Assembly (NCBI GenBank): GCA_965240325.2
Contig: OZ251238.1
Coordinates: 1,426,001 to 1,490,000 of the forward strand
DNA: 64,000 nucleotides
Direction of reading: 5' to 3'
From: Rebecca billardiae RCC1528
Lineage: Eukaryota; Protista; Haptophyta
Part shown: piece after piece, positions 3,369-39,601 of the stretch
Position numbering within the stretch: the first letter of the stretch is position 1
How the letters are laid out: each line of letters starts with the position of its first letter
Notes under the pieces: generated by a model
The model's input: only the letters and a program-made list of their open reading frames with translations
What the model was told of the DNA's origin: nothing
Database searches by the model: none
Position numbers and translations under genes: made by a program

Positions 3369-4062
3369 CGATCGTCGGGAGGACTTTGCGCTGATGACCG
3401 ACGCGGCAAGACGAAATCACGCGAAAATCACCCCTTCTGTACACCCGCTTCACCGGACACTATGGTACAAAATCACAGCTCTGATTTTGCGGCGGCAGTG
3501 GGCCAGTCGTGGCCGGCGACCAACGACTGTCTGTGAGCGTGTGATGACTGTGAGGCTTTGCGGGCCGCGGTACGGGTAGGCCCTAGGCCTAGGGCTAGCG
3601 TGTGGACAGCCGTGTCTGCCGTGTGGACGTGTGGACTGTGGTGACAGAGTGTCGACCGGCGCGACTCGGACTGCATCGTCCTAGCCTACCTGAGTCTTCT
3701 ACACGACCTCGTCTGAAGGTCGACGGCTGCTGGTCAGTGGTCTGGCGCAATCCGACTTGCCGGGCAGCTCCGCAGCGCCCGTGGCCATCAGCTCACTCTG
3801 GCGTGTCGGACCCGCAACCGGCGCGGCGGCGTCGGCGGGCCCGGCCGCGGGCGGACCACCGTCACGTCTTAGCCCTCGTCCCGTCTCGCCCAGCTTCAGA
3901 CTGCGGGGGCCGATGGCGGAGCCCACGACCCACGGCCGCAGATTGCCCGACCTCCACGTGCCCAGCGCCTCCCTCGCCCCCGGGCCGCCAGCGCGAGCGC
4001 AGGCCGTCAGCGCACGCCGCGCCGCCGCGGCGCGAGGCCGAGGGGGGCTCGGGAGTGCGCGC

Positions 4063-5573
4063 CTAGTACTCCTCGCCCTCCTCCTCGTCGAACTCGCCCT
4101 CCTCCTCGGCGGAGGCGTCCTGGTACTGCTGGTACTCGGAGACGAGGTCGTTGAGGTTCGACTCCGCCTCGGTGAACTCCATCTCGTCCATGCCCTCGCC
4201 CGTGTACCAGTGGAGGAACGCCTTGCGGCGGAACATGGCGGTGAACTGCTCGGAGATGCGCTTCATCACCTCCTGCATGCACGTCGAGTTGCCGACAAAC
4301 GCGACGGCCATCTTGAGGCCCTTGGGCGGGATGTCGCAGATGGACGACTTGATGTTGTTCGGGATCCACTCGACGAAGTACGACGAGTTCTTGTTCTGCA
4401 CGTTAAGCATCTGCTCGTCCACCTCCTTGGTCGACATGCGGCCGCGGAAGAGCGCCGCCGCCGTCAGGTAGCGGCCGTGGCGCGGGTCGGCGGCGGCCAT
4501 CATGTTCTTCGCGTCGAACATCTGCTGCGTGAGCTCCGGCACGGTGAGCGCGCGGTACTGCTGCGAGCCGCGCGAGGTGAGCGGCGAGAAGCCGATCATG
4601 AAGAAGTGCAGGCGCGGGAACGGCACGAGGTTGACGCCCATCTTGCGCAGGTCACTGTTGAGCTGGCCCGGGAAGCGCAGGCAGCACGTCGACGACGACA
4701 TGACGGCGGCGACGAGGTGGTTGAGGTCGCCGAAGGTGGGCGTGGTGAGCTTGAGCGTGCGGAAGCAGATGTCGTACAGCGCCTCGTTGTCGAGCAGCAG
4801 GCACTCGTCCGAGTTCTCCACCAGCTGGTGCACCGAGAGCGTCGCGTTGTACGGCTCGACGACGGTGTCCGACACCTTGGGCGACGGGAAGACAGAGTAG
4901 GTGGCCATGATGCGGTCGGGGTACTCCTCGCGGATCTTCGAGATGAGGAGCGTGCCCATGCCCGAGCCCGTCCCGCCGCCCATCGAGTGCGTGATCTGGA
5001 AGCCCTGCAGGCAGTCGCACGACTCCGCCTCCTTGCGCACGACGTCGAGCACCGCGTCGATCAGCTCGGCGCCCTCGGTGTAGTGGCCCTTGGCCCAGTT
5101 GTTGCCCGCGCCGGACTGGCCGAAGACGAAGTTGTCCGGGCGGAAGATCTGGCCGAACGGCCCCGAGCGCACCGAGTCCATCGTGCCCGGCTCGAGGTCC
5201 ATCAGGATCGCGCGCGGCACGTACCGGCCGCCGGTCGCCTCATTGTAGTACACGTTGATGCGCTCGAGCTGGAGGTCCGAGTCGCCGTGGTACGTGCCGG
5301 TCGGGTCGACGCCGTGCTCATCGGAGATCACCTCCCAGAACTTCGCGCCGATCTGGTTGCCGCACTGGCCGCCCTGGATGTGCACGATCTCACTGCGCGG
5401 CGCGGCGGCCGGCGTAACCGCAAGGAGAAACCGAAACGCGGCACGCGCCGGTGAGTGCGGGTCGACGGGGCCGCCGCGCGGCGGGGCCGCGTGGGGACCG
5501 CGTGCAGGGCCTCCCACCCGCGCCCCCGACGCGCACCCCGCGCGCCGCGCGCCCGCGCGTGCGCGCACCGCAT
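4063..5573 (-). CDS. TUBB: Beta-tubulin; 5-nt first coding exon ATGCG (5573-5569), intron 5568-5393, exon 5392-4063
   Basis: Splicing restores [24 protein letters not shown] motif and acidic C-terminal tail present. Confidence 0.99.
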
Positions 5574-18644: not shown

Positions 18645-20210
18645 ATGACCGTCGCCACCGTCCACGTGTCCGCTGCACGCGCGGCGGCGCTGCTCGTGCT
18701 CGCGCTCACGTGCTTACCCACGCTGCTACTCGCTCTGCCGGCTGGCGATGCGGCGGATGCGCGCTCGGCGCACACGCGTCACGTGCGAGCGCCCGCCCTG
18801 CTCGCGGCGGATGCGGCTGACGAGCTGCACGACAGCACGGCCACGGCGGCGTGCGACGGCGGCGCGTGCGAGACGAATGCGACGGCTACTCCCGCGCCCA
18901 AAGACGACGCGAAGTCCTCTGACACCACCACCGAGCACGCGGCCGCGTCTGCCCCGGCGCCGCGTTCGCGCAACGAGACGCTGCCGACGGCGGGCGATGT
19001 GGGCGAGCCCGAGGCGCACGACGAGCGGCTGGAGACGGCGCTGTGCCTCCAGCGCATCGGCCGGGAGGACAAGCACGTCCTCTTTTCGCCAGAGACGGTG
19101 CTCGAGAAGCTCGGCCTTGCGGCGGTGGTGCTCCTGGCCGTGGTGGGCGCGGCGTTTATGGCAGGGCTGGTGGCCAGGGCGTATCGCCGCGGCGGTTGGA
19201 AGCACTTCACGAAGGCGGTGATGATGCTCGACGGCGCGCTGCTTGCGACCATCGACGGTGTGACGGACGTGCTCCTTGGAGCCGAGTGGCTCCGGTGCGG
19301 CCACACCGTCTGGGCGGCGATCGCGCTCGGCTGCGTCGGGCTGAACACGCTGGCGGCACTCGTCTTCGGCGCGGGGATGGGCGCCATCCCAGGCGGGGAC
19401 TCGAAGTGCGAGCGCGCCGGGGCGGCCGTGACGAGCGTGCTGCAGCTTTGCGCCGTGCACGCGGCGGTGGTGCGCGTGTGGCGAGGTGAGCACGTCGACC
19501 CAGTTGAGGCAGCGGCAGTGCTCGAGCTCAAGCAGTTGGAGGTGGCGCTCGAGGCGGCGCCGCAGGTGTTCGTGCAGGGGTACGTGCTGCTGTGGCTGGG
19601 CACGGAGCGCGCGTCGGCGCTGTCGTGGGTCTCGCTCGCCGTCTCCGTCGCGGGCATGAGCCTCGTGCTCGGCGACGTCCACGCCGACGATATGCGCCTC
19701 GCAGACTATCCCGGCGCGCGCGACGGCGGCGGCGCGAGATGGGCGGCGCGCGCGCTCGGTCCGCTCGGCGTGGTGAGCCGCGCGCTGCCGATCGCGCTGT
19801 TCGGCTGCGCTTTCGGCAACTGGCTCGCGCCGCCGCTGCTCGGCGCGTTCGCCGTGCTCGTCGCCCTTGTGCGCTCCACGCAGAGGCACGATCGCGGGTA
19901 TGAGGCGTGGGGCTATGCAGTGTTCTTCTCCTTCCTCTACTACGCGGCCACGCCCCTTGTGTGGCTGCAGGGCGACACCAGCGCGCGCGGCGAGGCGCGC
20001 ATCGTCGTGTGGACGGCGGCGGCCGAGCTCGCGCTCGGCGCCACAGCGCTCGGCGCGCCGTCGTATTGGCGCGCCGCGCAGCCCACCGGCTTGCTGGTGG
20101 TCGCCGCGTGCGTGTTCGGCGTGTGCTGGCTGGGCCGGCTGGGCGCAGCCGCCGTGCTGCTGCGCGCCAAGGCGGACCATCAGAGCGAGGCGCTACTGGC
20201 GCTGCGCTGA
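18645..20210 (+). CDS. XK-related multi-pass membrane protein (scramblase-like), paralogue 1
   Basis: Signal peptide, DGVTDVLL, LEAAPQVFVQGYVLL (XK ExxPQxxxQ motif) and multiple TM helices. Confidence 0.75.
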   Translation: MTVATVHVSAARAAALLVLALTCLPTLLLALPAGDAADARSAHTRHVRAPALLAADAADELHDSTATAACDGGACETNATATPAPKDDAKSSDTTTEHAAASAPAPRSRNETLPTAGDVGEPEAHDERLETALCLQRIGREDKHVLFSPETVLEKLGLAAVVLLAVVGAAFMAGLVARAYRRGGWKHFTKAVMMLDGALLATIDGVTDVLLGAEWLRCGHTVWAAIALGCVGLNTLAALVFGAGMGAIPGGDSKCERAGAAVTSVLQLCAVHAAVVRVWRGEHVDPVEAAAVLELKQLEVALEAAPQVFVQGYVLLWLGTERASALSWVSLAVSVAGMSLVLGDVHADDMRLADYPGARDGGGARWAARALGPLGVVSRALPIALFGCAFGNWLAPPLLGAFAVLVALVRSTQRHDRGYEAWGYAVFFSFLYYAATPLVWLQGDTSARGEARIVVWTAAAELALGATALGAPSYWRAAQPTGLLVVAACVFGVCWLGRLGAAAVLLRAKADHQSEALLALR

Positions 20211-20861: not shown

Positions 20862-23723
20862 TCAGTTGACGGCGACCATGGCGGCGTGCGGCATCATCTG
20901 CGCCGGGGCGTGCGCCTTGCGCGAGCGCTTCGCCAGCTGCGCCACCTCGCCGCGCGAGCCCCACGCGCTCCCGCGCCTGTACTGCGCGTACTCCCGCCGG
21001 TACCGGTTCAGCTTCTCCTCGTCGACCGCCTTGACAAACGGCTCGGGCGGCGGCAGCACCACCTCGGGCACTGGCACCTCCGGCAGCGGCGGCGTGGGCG
21101 CGCGCTCGGCGTCGGGGTCGGCGCGGCTCGGCGCGGCCGTGACGACAACCGTCGGCACCGCCGCGGTCGGCCGCGCCGCCGCGAGCTGCGGCGCGGGCGC
21201 GCACTGCACGCAGCCCTCGGACACGTCGCGCCGCGCCGCGTTCGCCTGCAGCGCGGCGTGCAGCTCGTCGACGCTCGTGTCGAAGAAGTAGGTGCCGTTC
21301 TCCGCGTCAGTGGCCATGCCGCCGATCGCGGCGCAGAGGCCCATCGCCGGGTTCTTGAGCGTGTGCTTGTCGAAGCGCATCTGGCGCACGAGCTTGTCCG
21401 CGTCCATCGAGCGCGGCACGAACGTGGGCAGCCCGGTCGCGCCGATCAGCTCGTAGTGCTCGTCCACGACCGCCTGCGTGCAGATGCCCTTGCGCAGCGC
21501 GATCTCGGCGGAGACGCACATGCCGATGGCGACGGCCTCGCCGTGGAGCAGCGGGCGGTGCAGCGGGCCGCTCCACGAGAGGTGCTCGACCGCGTGCCCG
21601 ATCGCGTGGCCGTACTGCGGGCACACCTCGTTGTAGTCCGTCTTCTCGTACGCGTCGAGCGTCGGCGCCTTGATCTCGAGCGCCGCCTTGCAGATGCGCT
21701 CGAGGTACTCGCCGTCCGTGAGCGGCTTGCCCGCGCGCAGCGGGTCGACGATCATGTCGGTGAGCTCGCGCGACTGCGTGAGCCCGTGCTTGAGCGCCTC
21801 CGAGATGCCGTTGAGGATGTGCCGCTCGCTGAGCGTCGAGAGCGCGTCCGGGTCGATCGCGATCGTGCTCGCCGGGTAGTAGCAGCCGAGCAGGTTCTTG
21901 CCGAGCGGGTGGTTGACCGCCTGCTTGAAGTCGAGCGCCGCGTCGAAGGTGGACATGGTGGTGGTGGGCAGGTGCACGAGCGAGATGCCGCGGTACAGCA
22001 TGCCCGCGAGCACGCCCGCCAGGTTGTTCACCACGCCGCCGCCGAGCGAGACGATCGCCGAGTTCTTGTTGATGCCGTTGCACAGGATCTCGTCCGCGCA
22101 CGCGCTCAGCACGGCCATCGTCTTGTGGTGCTCGGTCGAGGGCTCGCCCGCGGCGTCGGCGAGGTCGGAGGGCATCGCGGTCTTGTGCACCTCGAGCCCG
22201 GCGGCGCGGAGCCCGGCGACCACCTGCTCGCCGTAGATCCCGTCCACCACCGTGTCCGTCACCACGTGGATCGGCGCGCCGTGGCACTTCTCGGGCAGGA
22301 AGTGCTTCGCGTGCGCCGCGAGCGCGTCGAGCTGGAGCAGCCCGCGCCGGATGATCACCTCGGTGTGCAGCGGCTTGCCGTCGCGGCCAAAGGTGTTGCG
22401 GTAGAAGCCGCGCTCGTCGACCTCGCCCGCCTTGAGCAGCGGCTGCCCCGCCGGCGCCACGTTCACGTTGAGCGCCGGCTTCGCGTCGAAGTCGAACCAC
22501 GGCACGCGCGCGAGCCGCGCGCCGGAGGCGTTACCCGAGTTACCCGCGTCCAGGGCGTCGAGCCGCGCGAGCTGCTCCGGACTCAGCTGCCAGTCGAGGA
22601 CGGCGAGGACGGGCGAGGCGAGGTGCGGGAGGACGACCGCCGTGCCGCGCTGCACGCCCCAGCGGAGCAGCACCTGCGCCGCCGTCTTGCCCGTCTGCGC
22701 GCCGATCTCCCGCGCAATCTCCGCCATCTTGTCCGAGTGAAAATCGGTCGCGCCAGCGCCGAACTGCGCAGCGCGGCCGAGCGCACAGGCGCGAGCGCGC
22801 GCGCGCGCGCGCGCGAGCGGTGGCAGGGCGGACGGTCGGTGAGACGGGGCGGCGGGCGCGGCGAGGCGGGTGGATACGCGGGCTCCCGCCGCACTGCCGC
22901 TGCGCGCACGCACCTGCGCCGTCGGGAGGTGCGCCACGAGCTGGACGTCAAAGCCGCGGCAGTCGGCCAGCAGCTGGCGCTGCGGCAGCAGCGGGTGGGC
23001 CTCGACGTGGAGCGAGCGCGGCTTGAGGGTGCAGTCGGCGAGGAGCTCGGTGAGCATGCGCGCGTCGAGGTTGCACACGCCCAGCGCGCGCACGAGCCCC
23101 GCCTGCACCAGCTGCTCCATCGCGCCGTACGTCTCGGCGATGCCCGCGCGCGCGCCGCTGTGCACGAGCGCAAAGCTTGTGGCGTCGGAGCCGGGCGTCA
23201 TGCGCGCGGGCCTGCGCGCGGACGAGGAGCGGGCGGCGTGGCGGGCGTGGGGGAGCGGGTGAGCGGGGTGTGGCTGCGCGCGGGGCGGCGCGGCATGCGG
23301 CTGGGCGCTCGTGCGCGCACGCCCGCGCGCAGACTTGGCCCAACCGCGCGCGCGGCTGCGGCGCCGGCGGTTACGGGGCGCGGCGCGCGCGCGCGCGCAC
23401 CAGTGCATGGCGTACTCGTCGAGGTACTCGAGGCCGAGGTTGGCGAGCGTGCGACGGCAGGCCTTCTCCACGTCCTCGGGCGCGGCGTCGGCGCACCACA
23501 ACTTGGCCACGACGTAGAGCTCCTCGCGCGTCACGTCGCCCGCGTCGATCGCGTCGCGGATGGCCACGCCAACCTCCTGCTCGCGGCCGTGGATCTGGGC
23601 GACGTCGATGAGGCGGACGCCGGCTCGGATGGCGTCGCGGATCGTCTTGTTCACGTTGGTCGTGCCGTCCATCGCGTCGGAGAGGCCGACGAGCGGCATG
23701 GGGCGGTACGTGTTCGAAAGCAT
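20862..23723 (-). CDS. Fusion of aldo-keto reductase and 2-deoxy-scyllo-inosose-synthase-like sugar-phosphate cyclase; exons 23723-23401, 23211-22914, 22763-20862 (about 840 aa)
   Basis: AKR part: RLIDVAQIHG, VVAKLW, YLDEYAMHWP (completed by splicing), GVCN, EAHP, AQVLLRWGVQRG. Cyclase part: SLGGGVVNNLAG, YRGISLVHLPTT, DFKQAVN, GKNLLGCYYP, SEALKH, QYGHAIGHAVE, HGEAVAIG. In-frame GT-AG introns 23212-23400 and 22764-22913. Confidence 0.85.
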   Translation of the reverse strand: MLSNTYRPMPLVGLSDAMDGTTNVNKTIRDAIRAGVRLIDVAQIHGREQEVGVAIRDAIDAGDVTREELYVVAKLWCADAAPEDVEKACRRTLANLGLEYLDEYAMHWCARARAAPRNRRRRSRARGWAKSARGRARTSAQPHAAPPRAQPHPAHPLPHARHAARSSSARRPARMTPGSDATSFALVHSGARAGIAETYGAMEQLVQAGLVRALGVCNLDARMLTELLADCTLKPRSLHVEAHPLLPQRQLLADCRGFDVQLVAHLPTAQVRARSGSAAGARVSTRLAAPAAPSHRPSALPPLARARARARACALGRAAQFGAGATDFHSDKMAEIAREIGAQTGKTAAQVLLRWGVQRGTAVVLPHLASPVLAVLDWQLSPEQLARLDALDAGNSGNASGARLARVPWFDFDAKPALNVNVAPAGQPLLKAGEVDERGFYRNTFGRDGKPLHTEVIIRRGLLQLDALAAHAKHFLPEKCHGAPIHVVTDTVVDGIYGEQVVAGLRAAGLEVHKTAMPSDLADAAGEPSTEHHKTMAVLSACADEILCNGINKNSAIVSLGGGVVNNLAGVLAGMLYRGISLVHLPTTTMSTFDAALDFKQAVNHPLGKNLLGCYYPASTIAIDPDALSTLSERHILNGISEALKHGLTQSRELTDMIVDPLRAGKPLTDGEYLERICKAALEIKAPTLDAYEKTDYNEVCPQYGHAIGHAVEHLSWSGPLHRPLLHGEAVAIGMCVSAEIALRKGICTQAVVDEHYELIGATGLPTFVPRSMDADKLVRQMRFDKHTLKNPAMGLCAAIGGMATDAENGTYFFDTSVDELHAALQANAARRDVSEGCVQCAPAPQLAAARPTAAVPTVVVTAAPSRADPDAERAPTPPLPEVPVPEVVLPPPEPFVKAVDEEKLNRYRREYAQYRRGSAWGSRGEVAQLAKRSRKAHAPAQMMPHAAMVAVN

Positions 23724-24237
23724 CTCGGGCGTGTCGGCGGTAGGTCGGTCAACGCCTGGCGTTGCGCGGAGGTTGGTGTTGAAGTTTGGATCCGCCGGTG
23801 AATCGGCGGTTACGACCGGACTTGAATGTTCTGGGGTTGCGGGAAAGTTGATGACGAGCCGATAAGAATCGGCTAAAGCAGCCGGTATTGCCAGTATTCG
23901 GATGGTACTTGTGTCGCAATCCCGCGGAGTGATTCTTCGAATCTGAGCACAATACATAGCGCGTCCGCCGCTGCCCTCGTCCCTCGTCGACAGCGCCTGC
24001 CTTGTTGTCAGCCAATGACCATGCATCGCGGGGTAAGCCGGGGTAAATAGCCTCCAGCGTCCGCCGCCGCTGAAGCTTCCGAATCTCCTCCAGCCGCATC
24101 GGGTCTGATCCCGGCGGGTAAGCAACCGACCGTTCGTTGATGGTGAGACCAAAAAAGTAGGAGCTCTCAACCGGCCAAACCGACCAGCAGCCAACTCCGA
24201 GCACTCACCCGGCGCACGCATCAACGCACGCATCAGC
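23724..24237. promoter_or_regulatory. Probable bidirectional promoter of the AKR-cyclase and WrbA-ABM-ThuA pair
   Basis: 514-bp lower-GC spacer between divergent ATGs. GAATC/GATTC at 23800, 23866, 23931, 23939 and 24081; GAAnnTTC at 23824 and 24072. Confidence 0.55.
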
Positions 24238-26081
24238 ATGGGCCGCATCCTCGTCTTCTACCACTCGAACACGGACTGCACGTCGCAGATGGGCAAGCTC
24301 GTCGCCGCCGGCGCCGCGCAGATCCCCGGCCACGAGATCCGCCTCCGCTCCACCGAGGACTGCACGCACGCGGACGTGCTGTGGGCGGACGGCCTCGCGG
24401 TCGGCACGCCGACCAACCTCGGCGGCATCGCGTGGCGCATGAAGAAGTGGTGGGACGAGTTCGCCGCGGACAACTGGAACAAGTGCGACGGCAAGCTCTG
24501 CACCGTCTTCTCCTCGCAGGGCGGGCACGGCGGCGGCGCCGAGATGTCCTGCCTCGCCATGTCGACCGTGCTGATGAACTTTGGCTTCCTCAGCTTCGGC
24601 GTGACCGACTACGTCGACAAGATCCACACGCTGCACTACGGCGCGGTGGTGGCGAAGCAGCCGCGGAACGAGCACGACCGGCTCGCGTGCGAGCGCCTCG
24701 GCCTGCGCCTCGCCGAGTGGGTCGCCGTCTACGTCGACGGGCGCAAGACGCTCCACCCGCTGCTCACGACCAAGGCTGACGACGCCGCAACCGCCGAGAA
24801 GGCCAAGGCGGAGGACGCGGCGAGCGCGCCGGCGGGCGCGGCGCGCGCGGTGCACGTGGTCGTGACGAAGGAGGTGCCTGAGGCCAACCAGGCCGAGTGG
24901 CTCGGCATGGCCGAGAAGCTCGCGCACCACACGTGGCGCGAGCCGGGCGTGCTCAAGTACAACTTTGTCAAGTCGGCCGACTCGCCGACGCGCTTCGTGA
25001 TCACGGAGGAGTGGGCGTCGATGGCGCACCTCGAGGCGCACTTCGCCACCCCGCACTTTACCACGTACGTGCCCAAGATGGACGCCATCTCCGAGACCGT
25101 CTCGATCGACAAGTGCGTCGACGCGCTCGCGCGCCGCCCCGCGGGCAGCGCGCTGGTCGAGTCGCTCGCGGTCGGCGCCGAGCGCAAGCGCACCGCCCTC
25201 GTCTTCAACAAGGTGCGTGGCGCGCGCGCGCGCGCGCGCGGTGTGTGTGCGCGCGCTCGACCCGAACCGCCGCGCACCCGGCGCGCAACGCCGCGCTCAC
25301 GCTGCGCGCCCGCCGCCGCACCCCGGCACGCGTCCGCGCGCTCGCACGCCCGCAGGCGACTGCCTACCGGCACGACTCGATCGACGCCGCGACCGAGTGC
25401 ATGTGCCGGCTGCTGGCCGAGCGCGGCTGGGCGTCGGTGGTGTCGGACGACTCGTCGCTGCTCGAGAAGGGCACGGCGCGGCCGTTCGACGCGATCGTCT
25501 TCGTGAACAACTCGGGCGACATCTTCGACCCGGCCAACGAGGCACTGAGCGAGCACCTAGCCGCGGGCCGCGGCGTGCTCGGCGTGCACGCGGCGCTCGC
25601 GTGCTTCCTTACGGGCGAGTGCGCGGCCGGGCACACGCTGATGGGCACGAAGACGGACGTGATCCGCGAGCTGTACGGCGCGCACTTCCGCAACCACCCG
25701 CCGCCGCAGCAGGCGACGCTACACGTGCACCACGACGCCGCGGCCGAGCTCTCGCCCGCGTTTGCGGAGCTGCCGCCCTCCTTCAGCCACCACGACGAGT
25801 TCTTCAACTTCGACGTCGACCCGAGCGCGGGCGCGGACGACGTGCGCGTGCTCGTCTCGGTCGACGAGAAGACGTACGAGGGCGGGCTGCACGGCGAGCG
25901 CCACCCGCTCGTGTGGAGCCGCGCGCTGGGCGAGAGGCGCGCGCCCGTCTTCTACTCGGCGCTCGGCCACTTTGCGCACGACTACGACGCGTCCGTCGCG
26001 GACACGAGCCGCGTGCAGGCGGTGCTGCGCGCCGGCCTGGACTACGTCATCACGCAGTCGGCGCCCGTCGCGCCGGCATAG
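24238..26081 (+). CDS. Triple fusion of WrbA-type flavodoxin/NAD(P)H oxidoreductase, ABM (dimeric alpha-beta barrel) domain and ThuA-like domain; exons 24238-25212 and 25356-26081 (about 566 aa)
   Basis: WrbA part: ILVFYHSNTDCT, ADGLAVGTPTNLG, FSSQGGHGGGAE. ABM part: EPGVLKY, FVITEEWAS, HLEAHFATPHF. Intron 25213-25355 restores LVFNK-ATAYRHDSI; ThuA motifs GVHAA, FRNHP, DEFF, HPLVW and FYSALGH follow. Confidence 0.88.
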
Positions 26082-26429
26082 GCGCCGAGAGGCGGCGCTG
26101 CGCCGGAGCACGTGGCCAACTATGCTCAGGGTTGGCGACGGCGGCGCCGGGTCGCGGAGTTTCCTTTCCGTGGGAGTACCAGTACCGTTTATAGCGATGA
26201 GTGATGCTGCCAGAGTGCGACGACTAACGAATAATCAGTACAGTCGTACGTCACAGTCAGTCAAGTCAGCTACTATAGCTACTATAGCGCATCGCCGTCA
26301 TCAGCAGATCATCTACATCACCGCCTGCTGCTATGCGATCGGATCGGGCCGAGGCCCGAGCAGTGCAGCTGAGCAGCAGTCGTGACCGAGTGTAACGGCG
26401 ACACTCGACAGCAGGCACTGATGATATGA

Positions 26430-26431
<2 letters not shown>

Positions 26432-26518
<87 letters not shown>
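26432..26518. repeat. (TA)n microsatellite
   Basis: Uninterrupted TA run. Confidence 0.99.
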
Positions 26519-26519
<1 letters not shown>

Positions 26520-27507
26520 TTATTGACTCGATCCGCCATCACTGATTATTGAGATACGCGTTCTGAAAACGGTATATCTCGTCGCGTCATTTCATCATCG
26601 CGCGTCGTCATCGACGACATCGAGTCGTCATACTACATCGCCGTACGGGCTGATTATATTCGATCATCAGCTGGCTGCCGCGCCCCGGACGCCGACTCAG
26701 CGGTCGCGACGCCTAGCGCGCAGCCTATAGCCCACGCGGCTGCGGCGCTATGCGCGACATCACGGTTGACTAGTCTAGTGCCATCCGAACGTACTCTGAG
26801 TTGATCCCCGCGGGCCCCTGGATGACTACCAATTACCATGCGGCCGTCCGTAGCCCGGGCATCAGGCGGAGGCGCGGCAGCCGTAGCGGGCGTAAGACCG
26901 AGTCAGCATGTCTGTCCGTGGCGATTGGCGTGGCCGCCCCGACGACTGTCGACCCAGCGCGGACTGTCACTGACTCTGCCGTCTGCGGATCCTGCCATCC
27001 GCCTGGCCGTGCTGCTGATGCGTCATCATAATCGATTGCACTCTCTCAGTGCCACTACACTACTAATTTGGGCCTACAGCTGGGCGTCACGCGGACTACT
27101 CTCACTGCTCAACATATATCGTCAGACATCAACACTCTCGATCGGATGTACTTCGCCTTCGGCGTCGGACTGTAAGTAGTGACTGCTGCCGCTGACTACT
27201 CAGTTATCTATACTCATTGTCAATATATATATATAGTATATACTATATATATACTATATATATAGCTACCAGTGGTGTGCGCGGACACGGGACAGTAGTC
27301 GGACTAGTCGGCGGGCGGCGCCCGATTTAAACCGCAGCAGCAGTTATAAGGCAGTAGGCGCAGCAGTTATTTATTAGCGCGCAGCAGCGCTGACGCCGCA
27401 CAGACGACTACGACTGTCGGATCAGCCCGACCGCTATATATATGAGCATCATCATCATCAGTAGCTATCGTGAATAAAATTACATCGGCGGCATGTACGT
27501 GTCTCGC

Positions 27508-28539
27508 TCATCCAGGCGATGTCGGCTCGCTCATCGCCACCGGCGGCAGCTCGGTCAGCTGCGTGCGCGGCCTGACCGCGCCGGCACAGCAGCAGCAGCC
27601 CTCGCGGCAGCGGCGGAGCAGCCGCGACGTGCAGCAGCCGGCCGCGCCGCCCCCGTCGGCCGCGCCCCCCGCGCGCGCCGCCGCGAAGCGCTCCGCGATC
27701 TCCTCGAGAGAGTGGCCCTTCGTCTCGGGGATGTAGCACGCGACGAACGCGCCCGCGGCCAGCGCGACCGGTACGAACGCCAGCCACGCGCCCGCGGGCG
27801 AGAGCGCGAGCTGCATCGTCAGGAACGAGGCGGAGATCACGCCGGCGACGATGCGCGTGATGAAGAGCGCGAGTGACATGCCGACCGCTCGCACGCGCGA
27901 CGGAAAGAGCTCGGCGCAGACGACGTACACGAGCGGCGAGAAGCCGAGCGAGAACGAGGCCATGTACGCGCACAGCCCGACGATCGCGAGCGCGGGCGCG
28001 CCGCCGCTCGCGGCTGCCGCCGCGAGGACGAGCAGCGAGCAGCACAGCCCGGCCGCGCTCAGCAGCAGCATCGGCTTCCGGCCGACGCGGTCAAACAGGC
28101 TTGCGCCGATGCCGAGGAAGAGAAGCTTGCACGCGCCGACGCCGGTGATCGCGAGCAGCGTGTCCCTGCGCGAGCGCACGCCCGCCAGCCGCACGATGTG
28201 CCCCGCGTAGTACACCAGCGCCTCCGAGCCCACCGCCTGCGAGAAGAACGCCAGGCCGAGCCCCCGCCACACGAGCGCGCGCGTCACGCCGTCGCGCGCG
28301 CAGAGCGCGTCGGCGATTGACGAGCCGGCGGCGGCGGGGCCGGTGGTTTCGGGGTCGTCGGCGGCGGGCTTGCTCGGCGCCGCGCCCGCCCCGCCGACGC
28401 CGCCGACGCCGCTGTCCCCACCGCCGCCGCTGTCCCCACCGCCGCCGCTGTCCCCACCGCCGCCGCTGTCCCCACCGCCGCCGCTGTCCCCACCGCCGCC
28501 GCTGTCCCCACCGCCACCGCTGTCTCCACCGCCGCCGCC

Positions 28540-28577
<38 letters not shown>

Positions 28578-29268
28578 CGCTGCCGCCGCCGCCGGCAGCG
28601 CTTGCGCTCACAATGTCCCTCAGCTGCTGCTCCGCCGTCTCGGGCGTTGGCGAGATGTCGAGCAGCACCTGGCGCGCGCGCTCGATCTTGCCGCGGTGGA
28701 CGAGCCAGCGCGGGCTCTCGGGCAGCAGCGGGAGCAGCAGCAGCAGCGCCACCGGCGGCAGCACGCCGACGGCAAACATCCATCGCCAGCCGCTCGGCGC
28801 CGCATAGAACGCGAGCCCTGACGCATACCCGAGCAGGATGCCCCCGTTGGTCGCGACGTCGCCGAGCGCGACGAGCGCGCCGCGGTGCTCGGCGGGCACG
28901 AGCTCGGCGGTGAGCACGGGCGCGACCACCAGCGCGAAGCCCACGCCCACGCCCTGCAGCAGCCGTCCGAGGAAGAGCACGAGGAAGCCGGGCGCGACCG
29001 CGATCGCCGCCGAGCCGACGAGGAACGTCACGTTGGCGAGCGCGATGCCGACGCGGCGTCCGAAGGCATGCGCGACCCAGCCGGCGGCGACGCCGCCGAA
29101 CGCGGCGGCGATGTTCATCACGCCCACGGCGAGCTCGTGCTGCACGTCGCTCAGCCTCAGCTCGTCGCGCATGGTGAGCGCGGCGGACGCAATCACTCCC
29201 TGGTCGTACCCCGAGAGCACGGAGCTCGCGGTGGAGACGGCGATGGCGAGCACGAGCGCACGCTTCAT
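27508..29268 (-). CDS. MFS sugar-porter family transporter (polyol/inositol type)
   Basis: LSGYDQGVI, FGRR, GRLLQGVGVG, AEL..P...RG, WRWM, PESPRWL, DRVGRKPML, AELFPSRVRA and PETKG.SLEEI. Confidence 0.95.
28411..28592 (-). repeat. 18-bp coding minisatellite (GGGGDS about x7) plus poly-Gly in the transporter central loop
   Basis: GCTGTCCCCACCGCCGCC units every 18 bp from 28411 on the + strand. Confidence 0.95.
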
Positions 29269-29758
29269 GGCGGCGGCTCGAGCGCCCAGGCCGGGCTAGG
29301 GGGGTCGGCGAGGGGCGCTCGAGGGGCGGGCTAGAGCCGCTCGCCAGTCGCGCCCGTCGGTCGCCAATGCGCTGAACGGCAGCTGTGATGCAGATGACCG
29401 GTTGGCATCAAGCAACTTTTTTTTGTTTTTCCGCGGCTTGTGGCCTCCCGCCTCCGCCTTGAGTTCCGACGATCTCTCGGTGATGAGCCAGCCAGCGCTG
29501 ATCAACCGGAGGCTGTTCGCCGAGCTCACGGATACAACACTTGTATGGGCGGCATCCTATGGAGCCGGGTAGGGCGGTACGCGCTTTAGGAAAAAGATCA
29601 AGGGAGGAACCTTCTGGCTATAAGATTCCGTCCGCCGCTGCCACCTCCGCACCAAAGTTCGCGGTCGGTGCCGGAATCGGAGGAATCTCATTGGCTCGGG
29701 CGCTCCCAACGCACACCCGTCCAACCCGCCGTCGTCTCCTGCAAACTCACTCGTCGGG
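29269..29758. promoter_or_regulatory. Probable bidirectional promoter of the transporter and SDR pair
   Basis: 490-bp lower-GC spacer between divergent ATGs. GATTC at 29624, GAATC at 29674 and 29683, GAAccTTC at 29607. Confidence 0.5.
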
Positions 29759-30778
29759 ATGGCAACTCCTTCGTGGTACGCGCACCTCCTCAACAAGCCG
29801 AGGGGCGAGGCGAAGCCGCAGCCGAGTGAGCCGCAGCGCATCCTCGTGAGCGGGACCACCGGCTGGATTGCGAGCGGCGTCGCCAAGGAGCTCGTCGCCG
29901 CCGGCCACTCTGTCACCGGCATCGCGCGCCGCAAGACGGAGATCCCGGGCGTGAAGTCGCTGCAGGCGGACCTGCTCTCGGCGGAGTCGCTCAAGATCAT
30001 CGGTGAGCACGGGCCGTTCGACGTGTTCATCCACCTCGCCGGCTCGCTCGGCTGGTGCTCCCTCGAGCAGGGCGTGGACATCAACGTCGCGGGCACGCGC
30101 AAGATTGTGCAGGCGGCGCTGGACGCAGGCTGCAAGCGCGTGATCGTCGCGAGCACCGTCGCGATCATCGGCACGACGGCGCCGCGCTTCCCGCCGAAGC
30201 GGCTGCCGCTGCGCGTAGACGACCCATTTGTCGGCTCCGCCTGGCCGTACGCCCTCTCCAAGTACATGGTCGAGGAGCAGGTGGCGTTCATGTCGCAGTC
30301 GGACGCGTGTGAGGACGTAGACTTCATCGTCGTGCGCGTCGGCGCGACCGTGACCGACCCCCCGGAGATCGTGCACAAGGACGGCGTGGTGAACGGGAAG
30401 GAGGTGTCGTGGCCAGTCGAGCCCGCGCGCTGCACGGACAAGCCGTACGACGCGGCGAGCGAGAAGGTCTTCGTCGAGGACGCCCTGTGCGCGGTCGCGT
30501 ACTCGGACCAGGTGGACTGCCTCGTGCACTGCGCCGTCCGCTGCCCCGTGCAGGCGGGCGTGCGCCAGATCGCGTGCGTCGCGCCGCGGCTGTACAACAT
30601 CGACCCGGTGCCCGCCCTCTTCGAGTCGTGGTACGGCGCCGAGGTCGCCAAGGGCATCGACACATCGTTCTACGACGACCCGGCCAACCTGCATGCGCCG
30701 ATCTACGACCTCGGCCCGGGCAGGGCGCTCGGCTGGGAGCCAAAGGTCGACCTGCTCGCGTGCAAGCTGGCGAAGTGA
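29759..30778 (+). CDS. NAD(P)-dependent epimerase/dehydratase (extended SDR)
   Basis: ILVSGTTGWIA Rossmann motif, FIHLAG, INVAGT, VIVASTVA, YALSK catalytic motif and LGWEPK. Intronless. Confidence 0.92.
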   Translation: MATPSWYAHLLNKPRGEAKPQPSEPQRILVSGTTGWIASGVAKELVAAGHSVTGIARRKTEIPGVKSLQADLLSAESLKIIGEHGPFDVFIHLAGSLGWCSLEQGVDINVAGTRKIVQAALDAGCKRVIVASTVAIIGTTAPRFPPKRLPLRVDDPFVGSAWPYALSKYMVEEQVAFMSQSDACEDVDFIVVRVGATVTDPPEIVHKDGVVNGKEVSWPVEPARCTDKPYDAASEKVFVEDALCAVAYSDQVDCLVHCAVRCPVQAGVRQIACVAPRLYNIDPVPALFESWYGAEVAKGIDTSFYDDPANLHAPIYDLGPGRALGWEPKVDLLACKLAK

Positions 30779-32049: not shown

Positions 32050-32670
32050 AGCCGGCCGCGTCGATCGGGCGCACGTGGAGCTGCAGCGCGTGGCCGTGGC
32101 GGCGGACGCGCGCGCCGCGCCGCTGCTGCGCGCGCTCAAGCTGTGGGCGCGCCGCCGCCGGCTGAGCGACGCGTCGCGGGGCAATCTCGGCTCGATCTCG
32201 CACGGCGTGATCGCTATCTCGTTCCTGCGGAGCGGCGGCGGGAGCGGCGCGGCGGGGTCCGGGCACGCGGCTGTGCTGCTCGGCTTCTTCGAGTGGGCGC
32301 TGCTCCGCCTCGCCCTCCCCACGCCCGCGCACGACGGCGGCGGCGCCGGCAGCGGCCCGGCGCCGGCGCGGCGCCGGCGGCAGCGGTGCGCCAGGGCCGC
32401 GAGCTTATGCGTGCACGCGCCGCCGGCGCGCGTCGCCGACGCCGACGCGTCGGTGCTGGCGGCCCCGCCGGGCACGCCGTCTGACTCGGCGCTGCGCCCA
32501 CCGCCGCACGTCGCCGACCCCGCCGCGGGCGGCGGCGCGCGCAATCTCGCCGAGGGAGATGGCCGCGATCTCGCGCCCAATCTCGCGCGCTCGCTCACGC
32601 CGCAGCGCTGGGCGGCGCTTGCCCAGGAGTGGTGGCGCGCGCGCGCGCTGCTGCGCGGCGCGCTGGGCGG
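32050..32670 (+). pseudogene. Fragment resembling the PAP-associated (C-terminal) half of Cid1/TUTase nucleotidyltransferases
   Basis: LLRALKLWARRRRLSDASRGNLGS, LLGFFEW, HVADP and NLARSL. No ATG start and no DxD catalytic domain found upstream. Boundaries approximate. Confidence 0.45.
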
Positions 32671-33500
32671 CGGCGGCGGCGGTGGCGTGGATGAGGAGGG
32701 CGTACGTGTCGGTGCCGTGGGCGCGAGGGCTGGTTCGAGAGCGTGCTCTGCGCACCCGCCACGCCGCGCGTCCGACCGCCGCGCGCCAAGCCGCGCCGCC
32801 GGCCCGCCAAGCCGCGCCGCCACACGCCCGGCCGGGGGCCCCTCCCCGCAGCAGCGGCGGCGACGGCAGCCGCGGCAGGCTTCGACGGCGATGGCGGCGC
32901 CAAGCGACGCAGGAGACGGTGGTGACGCGTGCCTCCCTCGCCGACGAGGACGAGGGCCAGCGCGCGCGCCCTCTGCGCACGCGGGCGGCACTGTGGACGC
33001 TCCAGCGGCCCGTGCGCGCCGCCGCGCGTCGCGCGGCTGAGGGCGGCGCGCTTATGCCAGGCGTGCCGCAACGGAGCAGCAGCCGGCACCTGGCCCGCGG
33101 CAAGGCGCAGCGGCGCCTCTTGCGCTCGGTGGCTGCGCGAGGACGTGCGCGCGGCCGCTGCGCAGCGCCTGCGCGGTGCAAAGCCGCCTCGTCGCTGCGC
33201 GCTCACACGGGAGTCAGCAACGCGACCCGTGAGACGGTGGCGCCAGCGTATTCGCCCGTGCCGATATGTACATCACACAGTAGCCGACTCCGACGCGCAA
33301 GCTGCCGCGTGGCGGTGATGGTGATCACCGCCCTTGCTCCCGAGCATACTGTAGGGGCAGACAGACGGACGTCTGCCATCGCAGTGGCGACGTTTGGAGC
33401 GCTTCGTCAGTCGAACGGCGCGGACGCCGGACGGCGCGATTTCTGCTGCGAATCGCTTCATCAATTTCGAGCTGCGTATCATTCTTCTGGCGCCGCACGC

Positions 33501-35123
33501 ATGGCCCACGGCACCTCGCGCGTCTCGGCTGCACGCGCGGCCCCGCTGCTCGTGCTCGCGCTCGCGTGCGTGCCCGCGCCGCTCCTCGCCCTGCCGCTCG
33601 GCGATGTGGCGGCTGCGCGCTCGGCGCACACGCGTCACGCGCGAGCGCGCGCCCTGCTCGCAGCGGCCGCGGCTGACGAGCTGCACGACGGCACGGCCGC
33701 GGCGGCGTGCGATGGCGGCGCGTGCGAGACGAATGCGACGGCCGCCTCCACGCCCCAGGACGAGGCGAATGCATCTAACAACAACACCGAGCACGCGGCC
33801 GCGCCTGCCATGCCGCCGCTGCCCAATGGCACGGCGCGCGAGCCGAGCGCCCCCGCGGCTGCAGACGAGACGCTGCCGACGGAGGGCGATGCGGGCGAGC
33901 CCGAGGCGCACGACGAGCGGCTGGAGACGGCGCTGTGCCTCCAGCGCATCGGCCGCGAGGACAAGCACTTCCTCCGCTCGCCAGAGACGGTGCTCGAGAA
34001 GCTCGGCCTTGCGGCGGTGGTGCTCCTGGCCGCGGCGGGCGCGGCGTTCATGGGGGCCCTGGTGGCCAGGGCGCATCGCGGCGGCGGCTGGGCGCATTCC
34101 AAGAAGGCGGCGTTGATGCTCGGCGGCGCCCTGCTCGCAACCACCGACGGCGTGACGGACGTGCTGCTCGCGACCGAGTGGTACCGCTGCAGCCACCACG
34201 GCTGGGCGGCGATCGCGCTCGGCTGCGTCGGGCTGAACACGCTGGCGGCGCTCGGCTTGGGCGCGTTGGGGGGCTTCATCATTGGCAGGGCCCCGAGCTG
34301 CAGCGAGCGCGCCGGCGCGGCCGTGACGAGCGTGCTGCAGCTCGGCGCCGTGCACGCGGCGGTGGTGCGCGTGTGGCGCGGCGAGCACGTCGACCCAAAG
34401 AAGGCAGAGCATGTGCTCCGCCTCAAGCAGTTGGAGGTGGTGCTCGAGGCGGCGCCGCAGGTGTTCGTGCAGGGGTACGTGCTGCTGTGGCTGGGCGCGG
34501 AGCGCGCGTCGGCGCTGTCGTGGGTCTCGCTCGCCGTCTCCGTCGCGGGCATGAGCCTCCTGCTCGGCGACGTCCACGCCGACGATATGCGCCGCGCTGA
34601 CTATCCCGGCGCGCGCGACAGCAGCGGGGGGGACGGCGGCGGCGCGGTGTGGGCGGCGCGCGCGCTCGGTCCGCTCGGCGTGGTGAGCCGCGCGCTGCCG
34701 ATCGCGCTGTTCGGCTGCGCTTTCGGCAACTGGCTGGCGCTGGCGCTGCTCGGCGCGTTCGCCGTGCTCGTCGCCCTCGCGCGCTTCGCGCTGAAGCGCG
34801 GGGTCGGGAGCGTGTGTGGGGCGTGGATCATGGCAGGTATCGCCTCCTTCCTCTACTACGCGGCCACGCCCCTTGTTATGCTGGAGGGCACCACCAGCGC
34901 GCGCGGCGAGGCGCGCATCGTCGCGTGGACGGCGGCGGTCGAGCTCGCGCTCGGCGCCGCCGCGCTCGGCGCGCCGTCGCCCTGGCGCGCCGCGCAGCCC
35001 ACCGGCTTGCTGGTGGGCGCCGCGTGTCTGCTTGGCGTGTGCTGGCTGGGCCGGCTGGGCGCAGCCGCCGTGCTGCTGCGCGCCAAGGCGGACAAGCAGA
35101 GCGAGGCGCTGGCGCTGCTCTGA
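33501..35123 (+). CDS. XK-related multi-pass membrane protein, paralogue 2
   Basis: Colinear with 18645-20210 and shares long identical stretches such as HDERLETALCLQRIGREDKH and EAAPQVFVQGYVLLWLG. Confidence 0.78.
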   Translation: MAHGTSRVSAARAAPLLVLALACVPAPLLALPLGDVAAARSAHTRHARARALLAAAAADELHDGTAAAACDGGACETNATAASTPQDEANASNNNTEHAAAPAMPPLPNGTAREPSAPAAADETLPTEGDAGEPEAHDERLETALCLQRIGREDKHFLRSPETVLEKLGLAAVVLLAAAGAAFMGALVARAHRGGGWAHSKKAALMLGGALLATTDGVTDVLLATEWYRCSHHGWAAIALGCVGLNTLAALGLGALGGFIIGRAPSCSERAGAAVTSVLQLGAVHAAVVRVWRGEHVDPKKAEHVLRLKQLEVVLEAAPQVFVQGYVLLWLGAERASALSWVSLAVSVAGMSLLLGDVHADDMRRADYPGARDSSGGDGGGAVWAARALGPLGVVSRALPIALFGCAFGNWLALALLGAFAVLVALARFALKRGVGSVCGAWIMAGIASFLYYAATPLVMLEGTTSARGEARIVAWTAAVELALGAAALGAPSPWRAAQPTGLLVGAACLLGVCWLGRLGAAAVLLRAKADKQSEALALL

Positions 35124-38221: not shown

Positions 38222-39601
38222 CTACGGGATGCGCTCGCCGATCTCGCCCTCGCCGTCCCAGTCCTTGCCGACGCGCTCGCTCGCGAAGATGGGCAGCCGG
38301 TTGCGCATGTGCACGCGGTCGATCTCCCACAGCACGTCCACGGGCAGCCCGCGCCGCCCCTTGCCCGAGGCGCCGAACGCGCCGAGGTTCTGCTCGAGCT
38401 GCTCGGGGCTGGTGCAGCCGACGAGGCTCGAGGTGACGAGATCGCGATCTCGGCTCCAGCGGAGCGCGAGCTCGGCGAGCGGCATGCCGGCGCGCTTGGC
38501 GATGCGCGCGTACTCGCGCGTCGCCGCGCCCGCCGGCCCCGAGCGGTACCGGTACAGCGTGCGGCCCCAGCCGTACTCGTCCATCCGGCCACGCGGGCTG
38601 CCGAGCCTCCGCCGCGCCTCGGCCTCGTTGGCGTTGTCGACCGCCGCCGGCTCGTCGAGGTACTTGCCGGTGAGCATGCCGCCGGCGAGGACGTTGTACG
38701 CGAAGAAGCCGGCGTTGAGGTGGCGCGGCGACGACGCCTCGCTCACGCCGTTCTCCTCCGCCCGCCGGTCGAGCAGCGAGAAGTCGTTCTCCATCACCGA
38801 GGGTCCGGGCACGCCCAGCTGGCGCGCGGCCGCGGCGGTTAGGCAGAGCCCAACCGCGTTGTCGTTGCACATGCCGTACGCGCGGATCTTGCCCTGCTGC
38901 ACGAGGCCGCCCATCGTCCTGGCGAGCTCCTCGAACGACGCGCCGTTCTGGTACCACGGCATCCCCTCCATGTCGCGGTGGTACATCAGCGACTGCCCCC
39001 AGTTGGACTGGGGTGTGTACCGCGCCGGCCAGTGCAGCAAATACACGTCGAGATAGTTGGTCTGCAGCCGGCGCAGCGAGCCGTCGAGGTCGCGCACGAT
39101 GTTCTTGGGCGTGACGTTCGCGCCGCCGGTGATCTTCGACGCGAGCACCAGCTTCTCCCGCCGCCCTTTTCCCTTCGCCGCCCACCGCCCGATGATCTCT
39201 TCGGTCAGGCCCTCCGGCTTGCCCTCGCGGTCGTCGCTCGGGATCGGGTACTGCTCGGCGGTGTCGACGAGGTTGACGCCGGCGTCGACGGCGCGGTCGA
39301 GCATGGCGTGGCATAGCGCCTCGTCCGGCGCGTTGAAGTCGGTCGAGCCCCAGCGCTGCGTGCCCAGGCCCATCTCCGAGACGGCGATGTCGGTGCCGCC
39401 CAGCCGGCGCAGCCGCATGCCGCCCGACTCGCTCACGACCTCGTTGGTCCGGCGCGGCGCGGCGGCTGAGGCGCGGGAGGGCCAGGGGAGCCAGCTCCCG
39501 GCGAGCACGCTCGTCTGCACCGCCGCGCGCCGCGTGAGCGCCGGCTGCGCGCCGCGGGCCGCGGCCGTAATCAGCAGCGGGATGAACGCGGAAGCCGGCA
39601 T
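38222..39601 (-). CDS. Aldo-keto reductase, Tas-like, with N-terminal targeting peptide
   Basis: LGGTDIAVSEMGLGT, NLVDTAEQYPIP, LASK, YLDVYLLHWPARY, GKIRAYGMCN and LAGGMLTGKY. Confidence 0.93.
   Translation of the reverse strand: MPASAFIPLLITAAARGAQPALTRRAAVQTSVLAGSWLPWPSRASAAAPRRTNEVVSESGGMRLRRLGGTDIAVSEMGLGTQRWGSTDFNAPDEALCHAMLDRAVDAGVNLVDTAEQYPIPSDDREGKPEGLTEEIIGRWAAKGKGRREKLVLASKITGGANVTPKNIVRDLDGSLRRLQTNYLDVYLLHWPARYTPQSNWGQSLMYHRDMEGMPWYQNGASFEELARTMGGLVQQGKIRAYGMCNDNAVGLCLTAAAARQLGVPGPSVMENDFSLLDRRAEENGVSEASSPRHLNAGFFAYNVLAGGMLTGKYLDEPAAVDNANEAEARRRLGSPRGRMDEYGWGRTLYRYRSGPAGAATREYARIAKRAGMPLAELALRWSRDRDLVTSSLVGCTSPEQLEQNLGAFGASGKGRRGLPVDVLWEIDRVHMRNRLPIFASERVGKDWDGEGEIGERIP

Follow-up and report, generated by a model that had tools for sequence, protein, structure and literature searches.

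We analysed a 64-kb window of the haptophyte Rebecca billardiae RCC1528 (contig OZ251238.1, positions 1,426,001 to 1,490,000), which has a base composition of about 70% G+C; all positions below are those of the window. Its subject of interest is a block of four consecutive genes, here called A to D, which encode a sugar-phosphate cyclase fused to an aldo-keto reductase (AKR), a fusion of flavodoxin-like, ABM and ThuA domains, a sugar porter of the major facilitator superfamily (MFS), and an extended short-chain dehydrogenase/reductase (SDR). An earlier note, made from the letters alone, had described two divergent pairs of genes with sugar or redox domains and had proposed that they make a deoxy-cyclitol osmolyte. 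The description was borne out: Pfam searches found all four genes, with the expected domains, at the coordinates listed here, and the gene models place A against B and C against D as two divergent pairs. Homologous loci and proteins are denoted by L and P numbers.

20862..23723, minus strand: gene A, a fusion of an AKR and a sugar-phosphate cyclase (Pfam Aldo_ket_red 1.9e-30, DHQ_synthase 3.3e-27, DHQS_C 1.4e-21)
23723-23401, 23211-22914 and 22763-20862, minus strand: exons of gene A, placed by tblastn of P0175 and the L007 protein
23400-23212 and 22913-22764, minus strand: the two in-frame introns of gene A, with GT..AG borders read in the DNA
22500..23723, minus strand: AKR domain of gene A (Pfam)
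21219..22400, minus strand: cyclase domain of gene A (DHQ_synthase and DHQS_C) with the signature YNEVCPQYGH (Pfam, alignments and tree)
23724..24237, no strand: bidirectional A/B intergenic region of 514 bp, containing the 14-mer CGTCCGCCGCTGCC at 23962-23975
24238..26081, plus strand: gene B, a fusion of a flavodoxin-like domain (FMN reductase-like, perhaps WrbA-related), ABM and ThuA (Pfam; PDB 2ARK, 1e-65)
24238-25212 and 25356-26081, plus strand: exons of gene B, with the intron at 25213-25355 (splice sites and match to P0264 and P0266)
27508..29268, minus strand: gene C, a sugar-porter MFS transporter (Pfam Sugar_tr 2e-84)
29269..29758, no strand: bidirectional C/D intergenic region of 490 bp, with the same 14-mer at 29629-29642
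29759..30778, plus strand: gene D, an extended SDR (Pfam Epimerase 1e-21; motifs GTTGWIA and YALSK)

Genes in the window contain short GT..AG introns. The frame of gene A is open upstream to 24248, which the earlier note took as the start; homologues align from 23720 and place the start at 23723, and the open frame ahead of it is read-through. A single exon runs from the last part of the AKR through a linker (about 30 residues) into the cyclase domain. Because the junction is inside one exon, the AKR::cyclase fusion is real. The AKR and cyclase exons are collinear in the same way in Pavlovales sp. CCMP2436 (L001), and unbroken AKR::cyclase proteins of 776-795 amino acids occur in L007 and as P0121 and P0122. 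The spliced product of gene B has 566 amino acids and matches transcript-derived proteins of 567-569 amino acids from end to end (P0264, a 567-amino-acid MMETSP protein, and P0266). Among named organisms, Pavlovales sp. CCMP2436 (68-74% identity) and Diacronema lutheri (70%) have the closest homologues of the locus, which supports the inference in the earlier note that the organism is related to Pavlovales. A search of RNA runs gave none for the A/B pair. Among sequencing runs of any type, one environmental sample matched the pair, with 10% of the words, and it gave five short contigs with almost no coverage and no joints.

The solved structure most similar to the cyclase domain is DOIS, the synthase of 2-deoxy-scyllo-inosose, from Bacillus circulans (2D2X, 7e-40). 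Plant 3-dehydroquinate synthase (DHQS) is practically as similar (3.6e-39), and so are the bacterial DHQS enzymes. The residue comparison applies the established residue roles in DHQS and DOIS and the Aspergillus nidulans DHQS numbering to the alignments with these solved-structure matches. The DOIS metal ligands Glu183, His246 and His262 are kept in the alignment to 2D2X, and the cyclase shares the Lys loop K-Q-A-V-N with DOIS. The domain has the equivalents of DHQS R130, D146, K152, N162, E194, K197, K250, H271, H275, H287 and K356 as well. With the NAD, metal and phosphate residues all kept, the cyclase should be active. Three positions of the substrate pocket set it apart. The first, Arg264 in DHQS and Gly239 in DOIS, is Glu in the gene A cyclase; the second, Leu267 in DHQS and Phe242 in DOIS, is Pro; and the third, Asn268 in DHQS and the catalytic Glu243 in DOIS, is Gln. 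[quoted passage not shown] The signature (D/N)(F/Y)-N-E-M-x-P-Q-Y-G-H is essentially invariant in 111 relatives, and the Gln is present in all 111.

A FastTree phylogeny of 137 superfamily members was rooted on DHQS. Its non-DHQS part consists of two sister clades, one with the DOIS-type Glu (support 98) and a large one with the Gln (support 97), and the family of the gene A cyclase is placed in the latter. The Glu clade is recognised from its motif alone and contains no named DOIS. Judged from tree and signature, the Gln clade (NEMxPQYGH) is an undescribed clade of sugar-phosphate cyclases and the sister of the DOIS-type clade. The cyclase had earlier been assigned to the BtrC family of DOIS. 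That assignment does not hold, given the Gln at Glu243, the Glu at Gly239 and the separate clade; "DOIS-like" is correct for the nearest known relative and wrong as a statement of membership.

Most homologues are publicly annotated as 3-dehydroquinate synthase, and the plainest alternative is that gene A is this ordinary shikimate-pathway enzyme (AroB) standing among three unrelated neighbours. We find this hardly credible. Glu and Gln stand where DHQS has Arg264 and Asn268, the score with the NCBIfam AroB model TIGR01357 is 199.6 against a cut-off of 305, the family forms a separate clade, and, as described below, adjacency and fusions recur. AroB was rejected on the residues, the score and the clade. 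EboD (DEIS) was also rejected: the score with its NCBIfam model TIGR04425 is 144.3 against a cut-off of 400, and no ebo-type neighbours were found in the window, L006 or L007. The C7 cyclases are much more distant than DOIS (EEVS/ValA 4P53, 2.3e-26; DDGS 5TPR, 4e-17), and on these matches to solved structures this class was rejected too. No aminotransferase domain was found among the scanned open reading frames of the window or in L006 or L007, which agrees with what the earlier note had reported and led us to reject an aminoglycoside (2-deoxystreptamine) pathway.

In gene B, the best match of the flavodoxin-like domain is the Aquifex 'flavodoxin' 2ARK. WrbA proteins match this domain at only about 1e-8, and its score with Pfam Flavodoxin_2 is under the cut-off of that model. 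The ABM domain (PF03992) scores 57.8 bits against a cut-off of 23.1 (1.2e-15); it matches YgiN-type proteins, and LsrG is a weak match. ABM-fold enzymes include diketone isomerases, for example LsrG. The ThuA domain (PF06283) scores 119.2 bits against a cut-off of 33.4 (3.9e-34). We found no solved-structure relative of the ThuA domain by sequence and no description of ThuA chemistry in a literature search, and to our knowledge it has no known chemistry.

In gene C, Sugar_tr covers both halves of the protein and the best PDB match is GlcP (7e-52); the central loop carries a Gly-rich GGGGDS-type repeat at about 28384-28596. That it is a sugar porter, as had been claimed, stands. The further label of polyol or inositol type has its sole basis in the Atlas neighbours, which are named polyol/monosaccharide transporter, and is a lead. 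Gene D has intact GxxGxxG and YxxxK motifs.

The gene B family was found at eight independent loci. Four of them (the window, L006, L007 and L014) have a same-clade cyclase next to it, a proportion far higher than chance would give in eukaryotic genomes. A and B are head-to-head in the window, convergent (tail to tail) in L007, and in tandem, cyclase then gene B, in L014. L007 is a 1.24-Mb eukaryotic contig of 29% GC with gene B and an AKR::cyclase; it is related to L014 (74-75% identity) and yet differently arranged. The eukaryotic contig L006 (169 kb, 44% GC) contains a retrotransposon. Its cluster spans about 15 kb and comprises a gene-C-like MFS gene downstream of the cyclase (minus strand), an adh_short SDR (plus), the gene B homologue (plus), a type I phosphomannose isomerase (PMI) and a second sugar porter. 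This gene-C-like gene is intron-rich and collinear with gene C. Adjacency of A and B is thus seen in four arrangements in three lineages, which are far apart in the cyclase tree.

Fusions link gene D to the same set. In L035, a single open reading frame of 1,057 amino acids (1492-4665) joins an extended, D-like SDR to ABM, FMN_red and ThuA. Its SDR part is 45% identical to gene D, has the YALSK motif too, and is separated from the ABM part by about 10 residues. The fusion is telling because the gene D family is so small: a search of 5.8 billion proteins gave 12 homologues at E<1e-10, and the window's own gene D protein turned up there only on a 3.5-kb contig. ABM precedes FMN_red in L035 and is present as two repeats, and the order ABM-flavodoxin(-ThuA) in L008 (10001-11752) and L011 (972-1985) is the reverse of the flavodoxin-ABM-ThuA order in the window. 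Therefore, joining or shuffling of the same domains has happened repeatedly. Monosiga has ThuA as a gene of its own, neighbouring a flavodoxin::ABM gene. Type I PMI genes adjoin a gene B homologue in two unrelated clusters, L006 (11849-14835, plus strand) and L035 (about 895-665, minus strand, divergent); no PMI was found near the window cluster.

Linkage of non-homologous pathway genes is kept here beyond close relatives, as is expected of a eukaryotic metabolic gene cluster. Because adjacency and fusions recur in distant protists, these comparisons show genes A to D as an evolutionarily coupled, and by prediction functional, unit, to which the sugar porter is coupled more weakly. The earlier proposal that the four genes work together was thereby upheld. 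A post hoc observation gives a weak hint of co-regulation. The 14-mer CGTCCGCCGCTGCC is present as an exact copy in each of the two bidirectional regions and nowhere else within the 64 kb; the 10-mer at its core has 10 copies in the window, where 2.9 would be expected.

The surroundings of the block are different in kind. The neighbouring genes are unrelated and comprise XK-related genes on either side and a PP2C gene. The XK-related (PF09815) paralogues at 18645-20210 (plus strand) and 32559-35123 (plus strand) bracket the four genes, like tandem duplicates around an insert. A long (TA)n-type microsatellite lies at 26318-26542, in the convergent 3' region between B and C. Outside the cluster, at 38726-39382 (minus strand), there is a second AKR-like coding stretch, which resembles the AKR domains of L007 and P0175 only weakly (26-28% identity).

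The eukaryotic cyclases of the Gln clade are monophyletic (support 100), and their range extends far beyond Pavlovales. Haptophyte carriers are Pavlovales, Prymnesium (three copies) and Pleurochrysis. The cyclase is found in the diatoms Entomoneis and Cylindrotheca (Bacillariaceae) and an ochromonad, in the pelagophytes Aureoumbra and Chrysophaeum, and in the red algae Porphyridium (two copies) and Erythrolobus. The cryptophyte Rhodomonas, the chlorarachniophyte Norrisiella, the euglenid Jenningsia and the choanoflagellate Salpingoeca also have it.

The nearest prokaryotic relatives are NTP_transferase::cyclase fusions with 42-47% identity, in which the NEMxPQYGH signature is kept; some carry an extra APH or GHMP kinase domain. 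An alignment-based scan of species-representative genomes gave 20 bacterial loci (a single bacterial fusion protein as the query gave none). In 17 of the 20 the cyclase has an orthologous adh_short SDR no more than 4 kb away, mostly directly adjoining it. One group of loci (L096-L104 and L002), from bacteria of the candidate phyla radiation (CPR; Saccharibacteria and Magasanikbacteria) and uncultured Gammaproteobacteria, has the conserved order CDP-alcohol phosphotransferase, NTP_transferase::cyclase, adh_short SDR, APH kinase and IspD-like gene. This operon, which is apparently undescribed, resembles a pathway for making a CDP-cyclitol head group. In another group (L105-L113; carriers include Paraburkholderia atlantica, Burkholderia diffusa, Trinickia symbiotica and Rhodopseudomonas palustris BisB18), a stand-alone Gln-clade cyclase and the same SDR lie amid GT4 glycosyltransferases, UDP-GlcNAc 2-epimerase, DUF5672 and an ABC transporter, which suggests a carbocycle-containing surface glycan. 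The carbocyclic sugars bradyrhizose and caryose occur in O-antigens of related bacteria. The natural reading of the bacterial route is that the cyclase would make an inosose and the SDR a cyclitol, which would then be phosphorylated, activated with a nucleotide and transferred. This pairing of cyclase and SDR independently supports a core of cyclase followed by ketoreductase in the alga, and the same logic in the earlier note agrees with it.

These bacterial loci also bear on an alternative in which the algal cyclitol is not a free solute but a building block, to be joined to a lipid or glycan after phosphorylation and activation with a nucleotide. The operons with CDP-OH_P_transf, NTP_transf::cyclase, SDR and APH and the GT4-rich loci of Burkholderia and Rhodopseudomonas would fit such a fate. 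However, kinase, nucleotidyltransferase and CDP-alcohol transferase are absent from the eukaryotic clusters seen, which have a sugar-porter MFS instead, and we consider this fate very unlikely in the alga. Since the bacterial relatives are without flavodoxin, ABM or ThuA partners, the cluster appears to have been assembled in eukaryotes, and the idea that it is a relic of a bacterial operon was rejected on the same evidence. A metagenome scan with the gene B alignment, whose patterns fell in the flavodoxin domain, found 77 bacterial stand-alone flavodoxins and only three eukaryotic loci. The bacterial proteins (L015-L092) have about 185 amino acids and share 50-60% identity with 2ARK and with the N-terminal, flavodoxin-like domain of gene B. 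None of the 77 has ABM, ThuA or a cyclase nearby; because these relatives stand alone, the flavodoxin-like domain may have reached eukaryotes by transfer.

On balance, we read the locus as a conserved protist biosynthetic cluster, probably so in our judgement, with a C6 carbocyclic polyol (cyclitol) as its most probable product. A route to a cyclitol by cyclisation and then ketoreduction is well supported by these comparisons, and the end product that we favour as a candidate is a deoxy-cyclitol osmolyte. By family chemistry, the cyclase domain would act on a hexose 6-phosphate (glucose-6-phosphate or mannose-6-phosphate), eliminating phosphate and closing the ring to a 2-deoxy-inosose, and it would use the NAD+/metal mechanism common to DHQS-like sugar phosphate cyclases. 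A dedicated ketoreductase would reduce the ketone to a deoxy-inositol; the fusion and the conserved pairing point to the fused AKR in this role here and a classical SDR elsewhere, such as the adh_short SDR of L006. Genes B and D are functionally coupled as a single tailoring module, in which we propose that oxidation, dehydration or isomerisation, and reduction would alter the hydroxyl pattern. The steps given to ThuA, ABM and WrbA in the earlier scheme are guesses. The sugar-porter MFS would move either a precursor or the product itself. Each of the four proteins begins directly with its catalytic domain, so the pathway is probably cytosolic, which would suit a compatible solute.

Several observations weigh against this reading. 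Three of the four residues of the AKR catalytic tetrad (Asp, Lys and His) are kept in gene A, and the fourth, Tyr, is His (motif IDVAQIHG); the same His is found in the CCMP2436 orthologue. The Tyr is kept in the AKR domains of L007, P0122 and P0175, and the AKR domain is degenerate in P0121 and P0134. Because of the His and the degenerate copies, the fused AKR may not be the reductase that it was first taken for. Gene D, proposed earlier as an epimerase or dehydratase, has the Ser/Thr motif ASTVAIIG without the acidic pair (TDE/TSE) of the sugar 4,6-dehydratases, as read by eye against the known motifs, and no dehydratase was recognised anywhere in the cluster. Linkage, which had been suggested as the check on the proposal, is also uneven: A and B are together in L006, L007 and L014, but no partners were found near the cyclase homologues of Prymnesium (L003 and L004), L005 and CCMP2436 (L001), the gene B homologue of L008 has housekeeping neighbours only, and the gene D orthologue of Diacronema lutheri (L093) sits among unrelated genes. 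In Porphyridium and CCMP2436, A-type and B-type genes are on separate contigs. Choanoflagellates and the euglenid carry the cyclase family, yet we know of no such osmolyte in them. Finally, quinone and quinol chemistry is where a flavodoxin-like reductase and ABM typically go together, and a simple route to a deoxy-cyclitol would have no need of it.

The last point leads to an alternative product, an oxidised or aromatised redox compound (a hydroxyquinol, a hydroxybenzoquinone or a reductone-like enediol), gadusol-like in its role. The flavodoxin-like domain would then be an NAD(P)H:quinone reductase and ABM a quinol monooxygenase. MdaB and YgiN of E. coli are a couple of just this kind, a quinone reductase and an ABM quinol monooxygenase; the flavodoxin-like domain of gene B may be related to WrbA quinone reductases, and its ABM domain matches YgiN-type proteins. 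DOI (2-deoxy-scyllo-inosose) readily dehydrates to benzenoids and has been called a precursor of benzenoid metabolites (PMC7348060). Against this, the two or three ketoreductase-type domains (AKR, SDR and adh_short) and the sugar/polyol porter favour a polyol, and the bacterial sister systems appear to reduce, phosphorylate and nucleotide-activate their product, which implies a stable cyclitol. We judge a redox product to be unlikely.

If the product is a cyclitol, a narrower question is which one. 1,4/2,5-Cyclohexanetetrol is reported to occur in Pavlovales. Isochrysis galbana and two diatoms, Chaetoceros muelleri and Nitzschia ovalis, are further reported sources of cyclohexanetetrol (PMC7998644, PMC5334607), and the presence of the cyclase in haptophytes and in Bacillariaceae (Cylindrotheca) is compatible with the osmolyte idea. 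Proto-quercitol is cited as a thraustochytrid solute, and yeast reductases readily convert BtrC-made DOI to quercitols (PMC7348060). The narrower version names 1,4/2,5-cyclohexanetetrol or quercitol specifically, made from glucose-6-phosphate via 2-deoxy-scyllo-inosose. DOIS is the closest solved structure, and the chemistry is feasible. A second hydroxyl might be removed via a 1,2-diketone: the hydroxyl para to the ring CH2 would be eliminated from DOI, as inosose dehydratase does in inositol catabolism, and two ketoreductions, by AKR and SDR, would give the 1,2,4,5-tetrol pattern. However, DOIS Glu243 is Gln in the cyclase, the cyclase family is much wider than the known producers, and, as said above, the cluster has no recognised dehydratase. 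The PMI genes beside the L006 and L035 clusters suggest mannose-6-phosphate rather than glucose-6-phosphate as the substrate. A ring derived from it would have the manno configuration, with a cis diol that is incompatible with an all-trans tetrol unless an epimerisation intervenes. We hold this specific assignment to be rather doubtful.

Searches of the accessible literature on cyclohexanetetrol, on algal DOIS and on the domain combination returned no gene assignment and no description of the cluster or the clade. It is possible, if doubtful, that the cluster and its relatives represent the unassigned pathway to deoxy-cyclitol solutes, that is 1,4/2,5-cyclohexanetetrol in Pavlovales, Isochrysis and diatoms and perhaps quercitol in thraustochytrids, with a cyclase that is new in its substrate or product class and a new four-domain tailoring system. 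If this were true, the ThuA family would gain its first defined chemistry, within a system of SDR, ABM, FMN reductase and ThuA. Algal deoxy-cyclitol osmolytes have been known for decades, and the cluster offers testable candidate genes for them. The pathways to aminoglycosides, validamycin, acarbose, mycosporines and gadusol all begin with sugar phosphate cyclases. A Gln clade widespread in protists would imply that marine plankton make a carbocyclic metabolite that has gone unrecognised and is probably abundant. Protists seldom have conserved multigene clusters or recurrent fusions, and here these give function predictions for eukaryotic ThuA and ABM domains. The sister operons of bacteria point to a cyclitol-phosphate decoration of the envelope, likewise undescribed, in CPR bacteria and Proteobacteria.

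Among known systems, DOIS (BtrC) shares with the gene A cyclase its fold, metal ligands and Lys loop, and both are without the carboxylate-binding Arg of DHQS. It differs at Glu243, Gly239 and Phe242, where the Gln, Glu and Pro of gene A are invariant in the family. The aminotransferase and aminoglycoside context of DOIS is absent here, and the carriers of the Gln-clade cluster are eukaryotic. AroB has the same Pfam domains and NAD-, metal- and phosphate-binding residues, whereas Arg264 and Asn268 are Glu and Gln in the gene A cyclase, which belongs to a separate clade. EboD/DEIS is likewise a DHQS-like cyclase in a cryptic cluster of algae and bacteria, and its substrate is mannose-6-phosphate (PMC12904256, PMC5133447 for the clusters; PMC12904256 for the substrate), the same compound that is hinted at here by the PMI genes beside two clusters. 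The ebo clusters differ in their UbiA prenyltransferase, TatD-like, xylose-isomerase-like and EboF neighbours, which are absent from the clusters described here. The gadusol locus of vertebrates and green algae, with EEVS beside MT-Ox, was discovered through gene neighbourhood (PMC4426668, PMC7826186) and also combines a eukaryotic cyclase with a multidomain oxidoreductase fusion. EEVS, however, is a C7 (sedoheptulose-7-phosphate) cyclase and a distant relative, and its locus has a methyltransferase in place of the AKR, flavodoxin, ABM, ThuA and SDR found here. The bacterial NTP_transferase::cyclase(::APH) fusions are alike in belonging to the Gln clade, in their NEMxPQYGH signature and in the ketoreductase alongside. 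They differ in their predicted role in product activation and transfer to glycoconjugates, whereas the eukaryotic cyclase is partnered by AKR, flavodoxin/ABM/ThuA, an extended SDR and an MFS transporter.

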